Shown one piece after another: positions 24,637-32,296 of a stretch of DNA of 64,000 nt; within the stretch, counting starts at the first letter, position 1; every line of letters begins with the position of its first letter. Where the stretch lies: assembly GCA_002269645.1 (NCBI GenBank), contig NIVC01000868.1, positions 124,001 through 188,000 on the forward strand, given 5' to 3'. Below the pieces are notes generated by a model. It was not told where the DNA came from, ran no database searches, and saw nothing but the letters and a program-made list of their open reading frames with translations. The translations under genes and the position numbers were made by a program. The DNA comes from Macrostomum lignano (taxonomy: Eukaryota).

Positions 24637-27600
24637 CCAATCATCCTGCATCCTGCATTTACAACGCTGCATCCGTCATTTGGTTCACTTGCTGCTCACA
24701 AGCCGCAGCAGCAGCAGCCGCTATCCGTGCAGGCAGTCAGTCTATTTGTGAATTTTCTGGTGGATCTGAAGAAAACCCGTCCGGCACAGGATTAAAGAGA
24801 AAGAGACGATCTGTTTTGGGTGAGTATTATCTGCTGTAGAAGTATTGTACACCAGAGTACTTGTGTTACTTGGTAGAGCACAATTGAAAAGCAATGCAAC
24901 AATCTCAGTGGCATTGTTGGGACACAAGCTACAAACGCATTGAATAGTAAACACAGCCCAGCCTAGCTCAAGGCTAGTAATTTGTTGGGCATTTATTGGG
25001 ACATTGCAGCCAGGCCTATTTTTTGAACAGCATTTGTTGGGTCGCACTTATTGGGACAATACTGATTCTAATCGCGACTACTTCTGAGTTCTGACTTTTC
25101 AAAACAGACCCAGCATTAGTTGAACACGTTCTATTAAAGGGTTCCTTTATAGCCTATTAATGATTACTAAAGGCAAGCCTATCTTAATTGATTTCTTTTC
25201 CTCGCAGATTCTGAAGTCAGCCACGCCAGCGACATGCCTAAGAGACAAGAATGCGCTTTAACGATCAGCAGCGAGCATTCTGATCTCGCCGCTGCATCCG
25301 TCATTTGGTTCACTTGCTGCTCACAAGCCGCAGCAGCAGCAGCCGCTATCCGTGCAGGCAGTCAGTCTATTTGTGAATTTTCTGGTGGATCTGAAGAAAA
25401 CCCGTCCGGCACAGGATTAAAGAGAAAGAGACGATCTGTTTTGGGTGAGTATTATCTGCTGTAGAAGTATTGTACACCAGAGTACTTGTGTTACTTGGTA
25501 GAGCACAATTGAAAAGCAATGCAACAATCTCAGTGGCATTGTTGGGACACAAGCTACAAACGCATTGAATAGTAAACACAGCCCAGCCTAGCTCAAGGCT
25601 AGTAATTTGTTGGGCATTTATTGGGACATTGCAGCCAGGCCTATTTTTTGAACAGCATTTGTTGGGTCGCACTTATTGGGACAATACTGATTCTAATCGC
25701 GACTACTTCTGAGTTCTGACTTTTCAAAACAGACCCAGCATTAGTTGAACACGTTCTATTAAAGGGTTCCTTTATAGCCTATTAATGATTACTAAAGGCA
25801 AGCCTATCTTAATTGATTTCTTTTCCTCGCAGATTCTGAAGTCAGCCACGCCAGCGACATGCCTAAGAGACAAGAATGCGCTTTAACGATCAGCAGCGAG
25901 CATTCTGATCTCGCCGCTGCATCCGTCATTTGGTTCACTTGCTGCTCACAAGCCGCAGCAGCAGCAGCCGCTATCCGTGCAGGCAGTCAGTCTATTTGTG
26001 AATTTTCTGGTGGATCTGAAGAAAACCCGTCCGGCACAGGATTAAAGAGAAAGAGACGATCTGTTTTGGGTGAGTATTATCTGCTGTAGAAGTATTGTAC
26101 ACCAGAGTACTTGTGTTACTTGGTAGAGCACAATTGAAAAGCAATGCAACAATCTCAGTGGCATTGTTGGGACACAAGCTACAAACGCATTGAATAGTAA
26201 ACACAGCCCAGCCTAGCTCAAGGCTAGTAATTTGTTGGGCATTTATTGGGACATTGCAGCCAGGCCTATTTTTTGAACAGCATTTGTTGGGTCGCACTTA
26301 TTGGGACAATACTGATTCTAATCGCGACTACTTCTGAGTTCTGACTTTTCAAAACAGACCCAGCATTAGTTGAACACGTTCTATTAAAGGGTTCCTTTAT
26401 AGCCTATTAATGATTACTAAAGCAAGCCTATCTTAATTGATTTCTTTTCCTCGCAGATTCTGAAGTCAGCCACGCCAGCGACATGCCTAAGAGACAAGAA
26501 TGCGCTTTAACGATCAGCAGCGAGCATTCTGATCTCGCCGCTGCATCCGTCATTTGGTTCACTTGCTGCTCACAAGCCGCAGCAGCAGCAGCCGCTATCC
26601 GTGCAGGCAGTCAGTCTCTTTGTGAATTTTCTGGTGGATCTGAAGAAAACCCGTCCGGCACAGGATTAAAGAGAAAGAGACGATCTGTTTTGGGTGAGTA
26701 TTATCTGCTGTAGAAGTATTGTACACCAGAGTACTTGTGTTACTTGGTAGAGCACAATTGAAAAGCAATGCAACAATCTCAGTGGCATTGTTGGGACACA
26801 AGCTACAAACGCATTGAATAGTAAACACAGCCCAGCCTAGCTCAAGGCTAGTAATTTGTTGGGCATTTATTGGGACATTGCAGCCAGGCCTATTTTTTGA
26901 ACAGCATTTGTTGGGTCGCACTTATTGGGACAATACTGATTCTAATCGCGACTACTTCTGAGTTCTGACTTTTCAAAACAGACCCAGCATTAGTTGAACA
27001 CGTTCTATTAAAGGGTTCCTTTATAGCCTATTAATGATTACTAAAGGCAAGCCTATCTTAATTGATTTCTTTTCCTCGCAGATTCTGAAGTCAGCCACGC
27101 CAGCGACATGCCTAAGAGACAAGAATGCGCTTTAACGATCAGCAGCGAGCATTCTGATCTCGCCGCTGCATCCGTCATTTGGTTCACTTGCTGCTCACAA
27201 GCCGCAGCAGCAGCAGCCGCTATCCGTGCAGGCAGTCAGTCTCTTTGTGAATTTTCTGGTGGATCTGAAGAAAACCCGTCCGGCACAGGATTAAAGAGAA
27301 AGAGACGATCTGTTTTGGGTGAGTATTATCTGCTGTAGAAGTATTGTACACCAGAGTACTTGTGTTACTTGGTAGAGCACAATTGAAAAGCAATGCAACA
27401 ATCTCAGTGGCATTGTTGGGACACAAGCTACAAACGCATTGAATAGTAAACACAGCCCAGCCTAGCTCAAGGCTAGTAATTTGTTGGGCATTTATTGGGA
27501 CATTGCAGCCAGGCCTATTTTTTGAACAGCATTTGTTGGGTCGCACTTATTGGGACAATACTGATTCTAATCGCGACTACTTCTGAGTTCTGACTTTTCA

Positions 27601-30600
27601 AAACAGACCCAGCATTAGTTGAACACGTTCTATTAAAGGGTTCCTTTATAGCCTATTAATGATTACTAAAGCAAGCCTATCTTAATTGATTTCTTTTCCT
27701 CGCAGATTCTGAAGTCAGCCACGCCAGCGACATGCCTAAGAGACAAGAATGCGCTTTAACGATCAGCAGCGAGCATTCTGATCTCGCCGCTGCATCCGTC
27801 ATTTGGTTCACTTGCTGCTCACAAGCCGCAGCAGCAGCAGCCGCTATCCGTGCAGGCAGTCAGTCTATTTGTGAATTTTCTGGTGGATCTGAAGAAAACC
27901 CGTCCGGCACAGGATTAAAGAGAAAGAGACGATCTGTTTTGGGTGAGTATTATCTGCTGTAGAAGTATTGTACACCAGAGTACTTGTGTTACTTGGTAGA
28001 GCACAATTCAAAAGCAATGCAACAATCTCAGTGGCATTGTTGGGACACAAGCTACAAACGCATTGAATAGTAAACACAGCCCAGCCTAGCTCAAGGCTAG
28101 TAATTTGTTGGGCATTTATTGGGACATTGCAGCCAGGCCTATTTTTTGAACAGCATTTGTTGGGTCGCACTTATTGGGACAATACTGATTCTAATCGCGA
28201 CTACTTCTGAGTTCTGACTTTTCAAAACAGACCCAGCATTAGTTGAACACGTTCTATTAAAGGGTTCCTTTATAGCCTATTAATGATTACTAAAGCAAGC
28301 CTATCTTAATTGATTTCTTTTCCTCGCAGATTCTGAAGTCAGCCACGCCAGCGACATGCCTAAGAGACAAGAATGCGCTTTAACGATCAGCAGCGAGCAT
28401 TCTGATCTCGCCGCTGCATCCGTCATTTGGTTCACTTGCTGCTCACAAGCCGCAGCAGCAGCAGCCGCTATCCGTGCAGGCAGTCAGTCTCTTTGTGAAT
28501 TTTCTGGTGGATCTGAAGAAAACCCGTCCGGCACAGGATTAAAGAGAAAGAGACGATCTGTTTTGGGTGAGTATTATCTGCTGTAGAAGTATTGTACACC
28601 AGAGTACTTGTGTTACTTGGTAGAGCACAATTCAAAAGCAATGCAACAATCTCAGTGGCATTGTTGGGACACAAGCTACAAACGCATTGAATAGTAAACA
28701 CAGCCCAGCCTAGCTCAAGGCTAGTAATTTGTTGGGCATTTATTGGGACATTGCAGCCAGGCCTATTTTTTGAACAGCATTTGTTGGGTCGCACTTATTG
28801 GGACAATACTGATTCTAATCGCGACTACTTCTGAGTTCTGACTTTTCAAAACAGACCCAGCATTAGTTGAACACGTTCTATTAAAGGGTTCCTTTATAGC
28901 CTATTAATGATTACTAAAGCAAGCCTATCTTAATTGATTTCTTTTCCTCGCAGATTCTGAAGTCAGCCACGCCAGCGACATGCCTAAGAGACAAGAATGC
29001 GCTTTAACGATCAGCAGCGAGCATTCTGATCTCGCCGCTGCATCCGTCATTTGGTTCACTTGCTGCTCACAAGCCGCAGCAGCAGCAGCCGCTATCCGTG
29101 CAGGCAGTCAGTCTCTTTGTGAATTTTCTGGTGGATCTGAAGAAAACCCGTCCGGCACAGGATTAAAGAGAAAGAGACGATCTGTTTTGGGTGAGTATTA
29201 TCTGCTGTAGAAGTATTGTACACCAGAGTACTTGTGTTACTTGGTAGAGCACAATTCAAAAGCAATGCAACAATCTCAGTGGCATTGTTGGGACACAAGC
29301 TACAAACGCATTGAATAGTAAACACAGCCCAGCCTAGCTCAAGGCTAGTAATTTGTTGGGCATTTATTGGGACATTGCAGCCAGGCCTATTTTTTGAACA
29401 GCATTTGTTGGGTCGCACTTATTGGGACAATACTGATTCTAATCGCGACTACTTCTGAGTTCTGACTTTTCAAAACAGACCCAGCATTAGTTGAACACGT
29501 TCTATTAAAGGGTTCCTTTATAGCCTATTAATGATTACTAAAGCAAGCCTATCTTAATTGATTTCTTTTCCTCGCAGATTCTGAAGTCAGCCACGCCAGC
29601 GACATGCCTAAGAGACAAGAATGCGCTTTAACGATCAGCAGCGAGCATTCTGATCTCGCCGCTGCATCCGTCATTTGGTTCACTTGCTGCTCACAAGCCG
29701 CAGCAGCAGCAGCCGCTATCCGTGCAGGCAGTCAGTCTCTTTGTGAATTTTCTGGTGGATCTGAAGAAAACCCGTCCGGCACAGGATTAAAGAGAAAGAG
29801 ACGATCTGTTTTGGGTGAGTATTATCTGCTGTAGAAGTATTGTACACCAGAGTACTTGTGTTACTTGGTAGAGCACAATTCAAAAGCAATGCAACAATCT
29901 CAGTGGCATTGTTGGGACACAAGCTACAAACGCATTGAATAGTAAACACAGCCCAGCCTAGCTCAAGGCTAGTAATTTGTTGGGCATTTATTGGGACATT
30001 GCAGCCAGGCCTATTTTTTGAACAGCATTTGTTGGGTCGCACTTATTGGGACAATACTGATTCTAATCGCGACTACTTCTGAGTTCTGACTTTTCAAAAC
30101 AGACCCAGCATTAGTTGAACACGTTCTATTAAAGGGTTCCTTTATAGCCTATTAATGATTACTAAAGGCAAGCCTATCTTAATTGATTTCTTTTCCTCGC
30201 AGATTCTGAAGTCAGCCACGCCAGCGACATGCCTAAGAGACAAGAATGCGCTTTAACGATCAGCAGCGAGCATTCTGATCTCGCCGCTGCATCCGTCATT
30301 TGGTTCACTTGCTGCTCACAAGCCGCAGCAGCAGCAGCCGCTATCCGTGCAGGCAGTCAGTCTCTTTGTGAATTTTCTGGTGGATCTGAAGAAAACCCGT
30401 CCGGCACAGGATTAAAGAGAAAGAGACGATCTGTTTTGGGTGAGTATTATCTGCTGTAGAAGTATTGTACACCAGAGTACTTGTGTTACTTGGTAGAGCA
30501 CAATTGAAAAGCAATGCAACAATCTCAGTGGCATTGTTGGGACACAAGCTACAAACGCATTGAATAGTAAACACAGCCCAGCCTAGCTCAAGGCTAGTAA

Positions 30601-32230: not shown

Positions 32231-32272
<42 letters not shown>

Positions 32273-32296
32273 GCTATCTGTGCAGCAGTCAGTTAA
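24637..32296 (+). CDS. Hypothetical repeat-exon open reading path through the array (79-aa repeat)
   Basis: Exons 25208-25444, 25833-26069, 26457-26693, 27082-27318, 27706-27942, 28330-28566, 28954-29190, 29578-29814, 30203-30439, 30827-31081, 31470-31721 are all phase 1-1 and open. Leading exon 24637-24819; terminal exon 32109 to TAA 32294-32296; AATAAA 32417-32422. Expression is not shown. Confidence 0.35.
24665..32278 (+). repeat. 624/625-bp tandem array (about 12 units), unit = intron + in-frame exon
   Basis: Unit ATGs at 25234, 25859, 26483, 27108, 27732, 28356, 28980, 29604, 30229, 30853, 31496, 32135. Each unit has acceptor tttcttttcctcgcag| and donor ttttgg|gtgagt. Confidence 0.97.

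Follow-up and report, generated by a model that had tools for sequence, protein, structure and literature searches.

The DNA analyzed here, referred to throughout as the window, is a stretch of 64,000 nucleotides from Macrostomum lignano (GenBank assembly GCA_002269645.1, contig NIVC01000868.1, positions 124,001 to 188,000 of the forward strand). On its + strand lies a tandem array whose repeating unit is one exon together with one intron, and this array forms the core of a discrete, dispersed element at window positions 22875-33364. An initial annotation, made from the sequence alone, had read the array as a transposon-borne gene of modular exons that could yield a cleavable polyprotein or products of variable length. 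We describe here the array, the element that encloses it and its copies elsewhere in the assembly, and we weigh what the repeat may be.

A tandem array of exon-intron units

The array consists of 12.2 head-to-tail units of 624/625 bp (24669-32296, + strand), each composed of a 237-nt exon and a 387-nt intron, with the last two units measuring 642 and 640 bp. A repeat finder returned the same start-to-start spacing of 624/625 bp from 24545 to 32370, again ending in spacings of 642 and 640, and a unit-to-unit identity of 99-100%. Because the longest period considered by Tandem Repeats Finder (TRF) was 500, the 624-bp array is unlisted by that program. The array had initially been placed from 24637 onward; its end stands, while its start moves to about 24669, since positions 24640-24668 are filler and array homology begins after them.

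Splice sites recur with the unit. The exact acceptor string TTTCTTTTCCTCGCAG is found 12 times, from 25192 to 32093, and TTTTGG followed by a GTGAGT donor is likewise found 12 times, with exon ends from 24819 to 31721. Eleven complete exons lie between TTTCTTTTCCTCGCAG and GTGAGT: nine have 237 nt, as annotated for all, one has 255 and one has 252, the surplus being added triplets in a (GCA)n tract. The first complete exon (25208-25444, 237 nt, phase 1-1) is followed on the same strand by exons at 25833-26069, 26457-26693, 27082-27318, 27706-27942, 28330-28566, 28954-29190, 29578-29814, 30203-30439, 30827-31081 (255 nt) and 31470-31721 (252 nt). A representative intron (25445-25832, + strand) runs from GTGAGT to TTTCTTTTCCTCGCAG and holds four copies of TTRTTGGGWC. 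The array is headed by a leading partial exon (24669-24819, + strand), open in frame from 24627 and with its donor at 24820, which in the window copy has neither an ATG nor an acceptor. It closes with a terminal exon (32109-32296, + strand) that contains (GCA)15, ends in TAA at 32294-32296 and carries a 1-nt deletion frameshift relative to one sister copy (L002, see below) and to copies known from ML2-derived protein models. An AATAAA polyadenylation-signal consensus follows at 32417-32422 (+ strand), 121 nt past the stop codon. Thus, the description of the unit as a whole intron plus an in-frame symmetric exon was recovered in every part (acceptor, donor, phase 1-1, single open frame), as were the 11 complete copies, the stop codon and the AATAAA.

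The exon is open in one of its three frames only, where it encodes the 79-residue peptide quoted in the initial annotation. Given that the exon is 3n nucleotides long and of phase 1-1, the frame is kept whatever the number of copies. A spliced open reading frame (ORF) of 1006 codons, from 24627 to the TAA, results when the complete exons are joined to the leading partial exon before them and the terminal exon after them. Its earliest in-frame ATG, the start of MPKR, is at 25234 within the first complete exon, and the conceptual product from this ATG in the window copy has 933 amino acids, arranged in low-complexity 79-residue modules with poly-Ala and with RKRR, the latter present in every unit. 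Tryptic peptides of the repeat include SVLDSEVSHASDMPK and QECALTISSEHSDLAAASVIWFTCCSQ.... The length of the ORF follows from amplifying one open exon, and the 1006 codons therefore count as one observation, not eleven.

As a control for chance, the part of the window outside the element, 107 kb with both strands counted, was scanned for a pyrimidine-rich acceptor followed 150-400 nt on by GTRAGT. The scan found 73 comparable acceptors and 95 GTRAGT donors, which formed 13 pairs at the required distance; two of these 13 enclosed an open frame, and neither was also 3n long. The exon-like structure of the unit is thus unlikely to be a product of chance. This bears on the other explanation offered at the outset, namely amplification of a promoter, 5' untranslated region or intron segment with a fortuitous frame. 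That explanation is closer in spirit to what we conclude below, but chance is a poor account of the exon-like structure itself; the part that seems fortuitous is the persistence of the frame from copy to copy, and this is a consequence of the 3n exon length.

The enclosing element and its ends

The element is bounded by imperfect terminal inverted repeats (TIRs) of about 56 bp, at 22875-22930 (+ strand; GTGCATTAGGCATTTCTTGGGACAAG..., holding one TTCTTGGGAC motif) and 33313-33364 (- strand; ...GTCCCAATAT...TTGGCCAATAAGTGCCTCGTGCAC). When the left end was aligned locally to the reverse-complemented right end, the score was 40, compared with 15 +/- 3 and a maximum of 30 for shuffled sequences, of which 0 of 2000 reached 40. 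Copies of the element are present at no fewer than four other unrelated loci of the assembly (Mlig_3_7, GCA_002269645.1), with 3.5 to at least 16 units; these sister loci, L001-L004, were taken from four GenBank protein models of Mlig_3_7 among the matches of a search with the repeat. The left TIR is identical at L001 6208, L002 4443 and L004 6112, and the left end as a whole is base-identical in the window, L001, L002 and L004 (GTGCATTAGGCATTTCTTGGGAC..., GTGCATTAGG..., terminus GTGCAYKAGGCAYTT...). The right end is base-identical in the window, L001 and L002 (...AATAAGTGCCTCGTGCAC, ...CCTCGTGCAC). Outside the array, homology of the window to the other loci is confined to 22875-24639 upstream and 32297-33364 downstream, and past the element ends no similarity remains, either to the window or among the loci themselves. 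At L003 a contig end cuts into the left arm, and homology begins there. That the array is transposon-borne, as originally suggested, is supported by a discrete element whose TIRs are significant and whose ends are identical in unrelated genomic contexts.

Between its ends, the element comprises two arms and the array. The left arm (22875-24639, + strand; 1.77 kb, 38% GC) is 96-97.6% identical to those of L001-L004 and is without a recognizable ORF or domain. It is followed by 29 bp of filler (24640-24668, + strand) at a deletion junction, in place of a unique segment of 703-707 bp in the sister copies. This segment precedes the array in all four of them and ends in an acceptor-like ...cacag/GTTCG, the slash marking the boundary; it is lost from the window copy, which explains why the leading exon here has no acceptor. 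Downstream of the array, a 38-bp minisatellite (32493-32747, + strand; 6.7 copies) carries in each copy a ATTGTTGGGACA motif, as in the intron, and differs in copy number at L001 (15318-15420, about 2.7) and L002 (11651-11829, about 4.7). The right arm (32748-33364, + strand) is 99.0-99.7% identical to those of L001 and L002, and homology stops at the end of its TIR. We considered whether the 703-bp segment and both arms could be old, diverged units and rejected this, as their alignment to a dimer of the unit was no better than that of shuffles and only a short TTGGGAC motif was common to them.

The left end of the element is abutted by a (GT)n microsatellite plus GTTT (22671-22874), which is flank or target sequence and absent from the other loci; the right end is abutted by GTTT plus (TG)n (33365-33396), also flank and possibly a duplicated TG-rich target. 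A candidate target-site duplication (TSD) is seen at L002, where the 9-bp GTGTGCATG stands on both sides, offset 1-2 nt from the shared GTTT. The window and L001 copies are embedded in (TG)n, masking any TSD, so that a TSD of 8-9 bp is visible in one copy only. TSDs of this length would fit the hAT, Mutator and P superfamilies, and the GTGCA terminus does not fit the YARNG end of hAT elements. A Helitron was rejected as a candidate, the ends being without 5'-TC and 3'-CTRR. No Pfam match was obtained for the ORFs of the arms, including one of 114 amino acids at 23972-24316, no transposase ORF was found in the element, and no further copy of the TIR was present in the 134 kb examined. An ORF in the right flank (33400-33790), probed as a route to an insertion-free homeologous locus, gave no homologue.

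Copy-number variation among sister copies

The arrays differ in length from copy to copy: 10.1 units at L001 and 7.1 at L002, both complete arrays, at least 16 at L003, where the array runs into the contig end, and 3.5 at L004, where it is truncated. Together with the 12.2 units of the window, these five copies bear out the variable length anticipated for the array. In all five the array starts at unit position 68, and in the three complete arrays (window, L001 and L002) it ends at about position 136. This shared phase indicates that the array predates the separation of the copies and that the number of units changed later. Units of one array are 99.0-99.8% identical, and units of different arrays 98.4-99.5%. 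With a unit of more than 100 bp, a variable copy number and a higher identity within than between arrays, the array qualifies as a macrosatellite, or satellite derived from a transposable element.

Three features of the sister loci may be recorded alongside. The L004 array is cut inside an intron, at unit position 287, with unrelated sequence from 11382 on, reflecting a later insertion or deletion. At L001, an interstitial telomere-type (TTAGGG)n repeat lies at 5900-5945, about 260 bp upstream of the left end of the element, and an annotated gene of 981 amino acids with a TIR_2 (Toll/interleukin-receptor) domain (1-20371, - strand) spans the element on the opposite strand, so that the element is presumably intronic there.

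Transcription and splicing

The cis-splice motifs of M. lignano are GT[G/A]AG and CAG (PMC8629364), and the GTGAGT donor and CAG acceptor of the array fit both. When the predicted GTGAGT...CAG introns are removed from the annotated gene ranges, two GenBank protein models, P0009 and P0005, are reproduced exactly. Two others, P0004 and P0026, use the same junction with C for A as the first exon base, and exact reproduction was not obtained for them. The Mlig_3_7 annotation that contains such models derives from a transcriptome guided by RNA-seq, built with StringTie and TACO plus de novo transcripts that had been mapped, and filtered against non-coding and repeat-overlapping transcripts (PMC5730564). 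Judged second-hand from these RNA-seq-guided models, the array appears to be transcribed and spliced at the predicted GT-AG junctions, in agreement with the modular exons initially proposed.

Not all database models are informative in this respect. The ML2-derived UniProt models P0012-P0025 mix three frames; we rejected them as real isoforms on account of weak donors (GTCAGT, GTCCGG) or single-base shifts, and we see them as the outcome of predicting genes on a PacBio assembly rich in indels. An array of spliced-leader (SL) RNA genes was rejected as well, as the 35-nt M. lignano SL (PMC8629364) does not occur in the window even when 3 mismatches are allowed. Read from the sequence, an SL trans-spliced to the unit acceptor would contribute a terminal AUG that opens the wrong frame, with a stop after 18 codons.

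Selection, homology and fold of the repeat protein

To assess the repeat protein, we aligned 41 complete units from four loci (window, L001, L002 and L003). A TGG>TAG nonsense change stands in the reading frame of 11 of the 15 L003 units, and frameshifts affect 7 of the 41 units across loci; all 11 window units are intact. Outside the GCA tract nine substitution events were counted, seven of them non-synonymous (one nonsense) and two synonymous. With 170.7 non-synonymous and 50.3 synonymous sites, the ratio of the two per-site rates (pN/pS) in the window's own frame is 1.03, and by binomial arithmetic on these counts a non-synonymous to synonymous ratio (omega) of 0.2 or less is unlikely (p ~0.025). 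Neither is the exon better conserved than its surroundings: variable columns number 8 of 222 for the exon as against 16 of 386 for the intron (Fisher p = 0.83), and the arms diverge by 0.2-2.1% in substitutions, like the units. The C-terminus, too, differs among copies. A 1-nt deletion in the terminal exon of the window and L001 leads to the ending AAICAAVS-stop, while the L002 and ML2 copies end in ...GGAGYFLSF-stop. Taken together, the nonsense changes, the frameshifts, the pN/pS of 1.03 and the equal divergence of exon, intron and arms form the pattern expected from neutral decay of young insertions.

Searches for relatives and structure gave little. A protein search with three concatenated modules returned 25 matches, all from M. 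lignano, and an exhaustive phmmer search over 1.84 billion representatives found nothing credible outside this species; no parental host gene emerged from the protein searches. The structure and profile searches of the 79-residue module that had been suggested returned no Pfam family, matches of the long repeat proteins to families such as Arr-ms, Bd3614_N and Ykof being sums of weak repeats with no single significant stretch, and no confident fold, as single-sequence AlphaFold2 gave a mean predicted local distance difference test score (pLDDT) of 42. By sequence inspection, with no dedicated predictor, there is no canonical N-terminal signal peptide: the protein that begins with MPKR has a single hydrophobic stretch, LAAASVIWFTCC, beginning at residue 26, and this stretch is not conserved in the second subfamily described below. 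These results go against the polyprotein envisaged initially. Judging from the variation among units, the repeat protein is not under purifying selection in inserted copies and most likely is without protein function.

Interpretation of the element

We propose that 22875-33364 is a young, non-autonomous TIR transposon of M. lignano with a macrosatellite interior, in which an array of exon-intron units is spliced and encodes no selected protein. We give this reading a probability of about 0.55. The ancestral element would have harbored a small transcription unit in which one 387-nt intron lay between similar exons, at least two in number, and a 624-bp segment reaching from mid-exon to mid-exon would have been duplicated in tandem. 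A duplication with such end points restores, in each copy, a complete exon with its donor, intron and acceptor. Later, the copy number may have been altered, and each array slightly homogenized, through unequal recombination or replication slippage. A transcript from the + strand would be spliced at GTGAGT and CAG and presumably end at the AATAAA past the terminal exon. Mobilization of the element would have occurred in trans.

Several points weigh against this proposal. Neither an empty site, a clean series of TSDs nor an autonomous partner was found among the sequences examined, and we infer mobility from structure and distribution. The evidence for splicing is second-hand, consisting of gene models and not of reads. 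The sample of substitutions comprises only nine events and is compatible with an omega of about 0.5, and some of the Mlig_3_7 frameshifts may be errors of a PacBio assembly. A second subfamily, B (P0030/P0028), found by cluster look-up, keeps an open frame. It is known only as ML2-derived proteins; no B-type unit was present in the loci examined, and a search with P0030 gave no B-type protein with a contig. The B module has 80 residues and is 50% identical to the window module (subfamily A), with a single in-frame gap. It shares the exon junction and RKRR, its C-terminal tail is similar (GAGFFIVSES-stop as against GGAGYFLSF-stop), and the block across the exon-exon junction, GLKRKRRSVL/AS.VSNASDMPKR, is near-invariant between A and B. 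Such conservation could reflect selection for a protein at the level of the family, as is the case for transposon genes whose inserted copies decay. The conservation of the junction block could equally reflect selection on the 30-40 nt at each exon end that are needed for splicing. When the A exon was evolved neutrally to 50% amino acid identity (about 73% at the nucleotide level) by substitutions only, with indels ignored, the frame remained open in 13% of runs. Moreover, only open frames become database proteins, and the evidence that B provides for coding is therefore weak; given that the simulation ignores indels, it leaves the coding case weak rather than absent.

These considerations lead directly to the explanation that fares best among the alternatives, that of a genuine transposon-borne coding gene. 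Here, a repeat protein of variable copy number would be made from the MPKR ATG, the junction block would serve as a nuclear localization signal or as a furin-type site that releases 79-residue modules, and selection would act on active master copies as inserted ones decay. The single open frame, the 3n exon and the strong splice sites exceed chance and are as such a gene would have them, as are the intact state of every complete window exon, the existence of transcript-derived coding-sequence models in GenBank, the name 'Secreted protein' that UniProt gives to some models, and the retention of ORF, junction, RKRR and tail by subfamily B at 50% identity. However, the nonsense changes in L003, the frameshifts elsewhere and the neutral pN/pS are hard to reconcile with it, the exon is no more conserved than intron or arms, and the C-terminus of the window copy is truncated by a frameshift. 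No conserved signal peptide, fold, domain or homologue was found in the searches above, an open B frame arises in 13% of the neutral runs, only intact ORFs are annotated as proteins, and conservation at the two exon ends is also expected from selection on splicing signals. On balance we consider a genuine coding gene unlikely; if the protein is used, a transposon would encode an unusual repeat protein, and a mobile element would produce a protein or polyprotein of variable length through a spliced macrosatellite. Rather unlikely, in our view, is its formulation as a lineage-restricted transposon gene, in which subfamilies A and B have both kept a protein built of one exon per module, GLKRKRRSVL-xSxVSxASDMPKR serves nuclear import or convertase cleavage, and unequal recombination of the exon-intron satellite adjusts how many modules there are.

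It is also conceivable that the array matters as DNA. The motif TTGTTGGGAC, at up to one mismatch, occurs 56 times in the window compared with 4.4 expected, and all occurrences are inside the element and on the + strand. The form TTRTTGGGAC is present four times per intron; the 38-bp minisatellite contains seven copies and the left TIR a single one (as TTCTTGGGAC), and the right TIR has similar sequences in inverted orientation. Within the reading that we favor, this distribution suggests that the amplified DNA may derive from, or double as, a subterminal sequence that putatively binds the transposase. Carried to its conclusion, amplification would have been of subterminal motifs bound by transposase or another factor, at about four per unit, with exon, splice sites and ORF as passengers. 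The excess, the single orientation and the sharing of the motif by intron, minisatellite and TIRs speak for this explanation, but within the unit the motif is confined to the intron, yet what was amplified is exon plus intron. Binding sites of this kind are compatible with the spliced macrosatellite transposon that we favor and do not exclude it; as a complete account of the array, we regard them as improbable.

A non-coding host gene, with an intron-borne small RNA in each unit (small nucleolar RNA, microRNA or piRNA) after the manner of SNORD116, would likewise show one exon and one intron per unit, splicing and a weak coding signal. The search for the small RNA itself returned little: Rfam matches at E <= 1 over 17000-38000 were limited to two low-complexity (GCA)n matches, the fold of the intron was no better than that of shuffles (z = -0.19), that of the exon was not unusually stable, and inspection showed no arrangement of C/D or H/ACA boxes. 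We judge such a host gene to be very improbable. Least credible of all is an artefact, either a repeat collapsed or expanded by mis-assembly, a concern raised at the outset and made plausible by units that are 99-100% identical and hard to assemble in exact number, or a chance exon-like pattern in a satellite that is never spliced: the units carry a structured internal pattern of variants (exonic I/L, intronic F/L-type), this array recurs at Mlig_3_7 loci and in ML2-derived UniProt models, one of which (P0032) starts at the window's own junction sequence, no comparable exon-like structure occurs in the 107-kb control, and the transcript-based models use the junctions.

Comparison with known systems

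Both satellites inside transposons and host genes made of iterated in-frame exon-intron units (LPA KIV-2, Flag silk, NBPF) are well known. What is unusual here is the combination, a dispersed TIR element whose satellite unit is itself a spliceable, phase-symmetric exon with its intron. Satellites within non-autonomous DNA transposons include Tetris of Drosophila virilis, the MITE-like (miniature inverted-repeat transposable element) pearl/CvA-type elements of bivalves and the central repeats of DINE-1/Helentrons. The present element resembles these in being bounded by TIRs and without transposase, in its head-to-tail interior, in a copy number that varies between insertions, in partial homogenization and in a motif shared with the termini. 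In contrast, their units are short and non-genic, typically of 100-250 bp, whereas here a full exon and intron with splice sites is repeated and apparently read as a spliced RNA of in-frame repeats.

With the variable-number tandem repeat of human LPA kringle IV-2, spider Flag and NBPF/Olduvai, the array shares a unit of intron plus exon, phase-symmetric exons, introns homogenized like the exons and products of variable length. However, each of those is a host gene at a single locus, with a protein that is demonstrated and domains that are recognizable. The present unit travels with a mobile element that is dispersed, matched no domain or homologue in the searches made and undergoes neutral decay, with nonsense changes across one array. 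Pack-MULEs, gene-capturing Helitrons and CACTA elements are similar in being non-autonomous, in carrying exon-intron sequence, here apparently transcribed and spliced, and in having ORFs of doubtful function; in the present case no parental host gene was found, and the unit, captured or the element's own, has been amplified to a 12-copy array. Precursors of neuropeptides or antimicrobial peptides that are processed by convertases also consist of tandem modules, each followed by R-K-R-R. Here, in contrast, there is no conserved signal peptide or mature peptide in the sequences compared, the modules are separate exons of a transposon, and purifying selection is not seen. Macrosatellites such as D4Z4/DUX4 likewise have large units with coding potential and a variable copy number, but D4Z4 units are complete, intronless, retrogene-derived genes at fixed loci, whereas the present units would be exons of one transcript and are dispersed by a transposon.

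Significance and database entries

On the reading that we favor, a lone exon-intron pair within a transposon can grow into a satellite and still be read by the spliceosome, such that any copy number gives an in-frame and seemingly huge 'gene'. The element would present, in a natural setting, starting material that could give rise to modular exon-repeat genes of the LPA KIV-2 or silk type, with the frame kept by geometry and not yet by selection. It also represents a previously undescribed family of TIR elements with a diagnostic end sequence, and as a marker of variable copy number it could be used to genotype M. lignano lines. The gene identifiers are not mentioned in any paper found, and the element is not described in the searchable literature.

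In databases the repeat is represented solely by 'hypothetical' or misnamed proteins. No fewer than 30 entries from M. lignano consist of the repeat alone, some of them named Dymeclin, UCH, Rho-GAP, BAF250_C or 'Secreted protein', and these should be flagged as products of a transposon or satellite. Examples are the repeat-only UniProt entries P0014, P0020-P0025, P0027 and P0033, which bear the names Dymeclin, UCH domain-containing, BAF250_C, Rho-GAP and DRIM. The misnaming looks as if it was triggered by the polyQ and polyA frames of the (GCA)n tract.

Other features of the window

About 6 kb from the element, on the - strand at 16102-16710, an ORF has a strong Pfam match to the Receptor L domain (E = 2.5e-21) and is probably an exon of an insulin/EGF-receptor-like gene. 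Just past the right end of the element begin two + strand ORFs of coiled-coil and transmembrane character (33400-33793 and 33812-34000), with no homologue in a set of 5.8 billion proteins. At about 34000 the 3' tail of a non-LTR (long terminal repeat) retrotransposon breaks into them, recognizable by a weak zf-RVT-like CxxC...HxxxxC followed by (GAA)8 at 34266-34290. Upstream, in the AT-rich left flank, two 106-nt arms at 19072-19177 and 19448-19553 are 96% complementary in inverted orientation around a spacer of 270 nt and look like a small foldback or MITE-like element.

The density of minisatellites in the window is extreme, with 69 TRF rows (e.g. 48464-54367, 10667-12859 and 3214-4479). 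An 18-bp unit is repeated 334 times over 5.9 kb with a GC skew of about +0.66, and a 17-bp unit is repeated 134 times. GC content is 50-65% in the minisatellite-rich flanks versus 30-45% between 18 and 36 kb.

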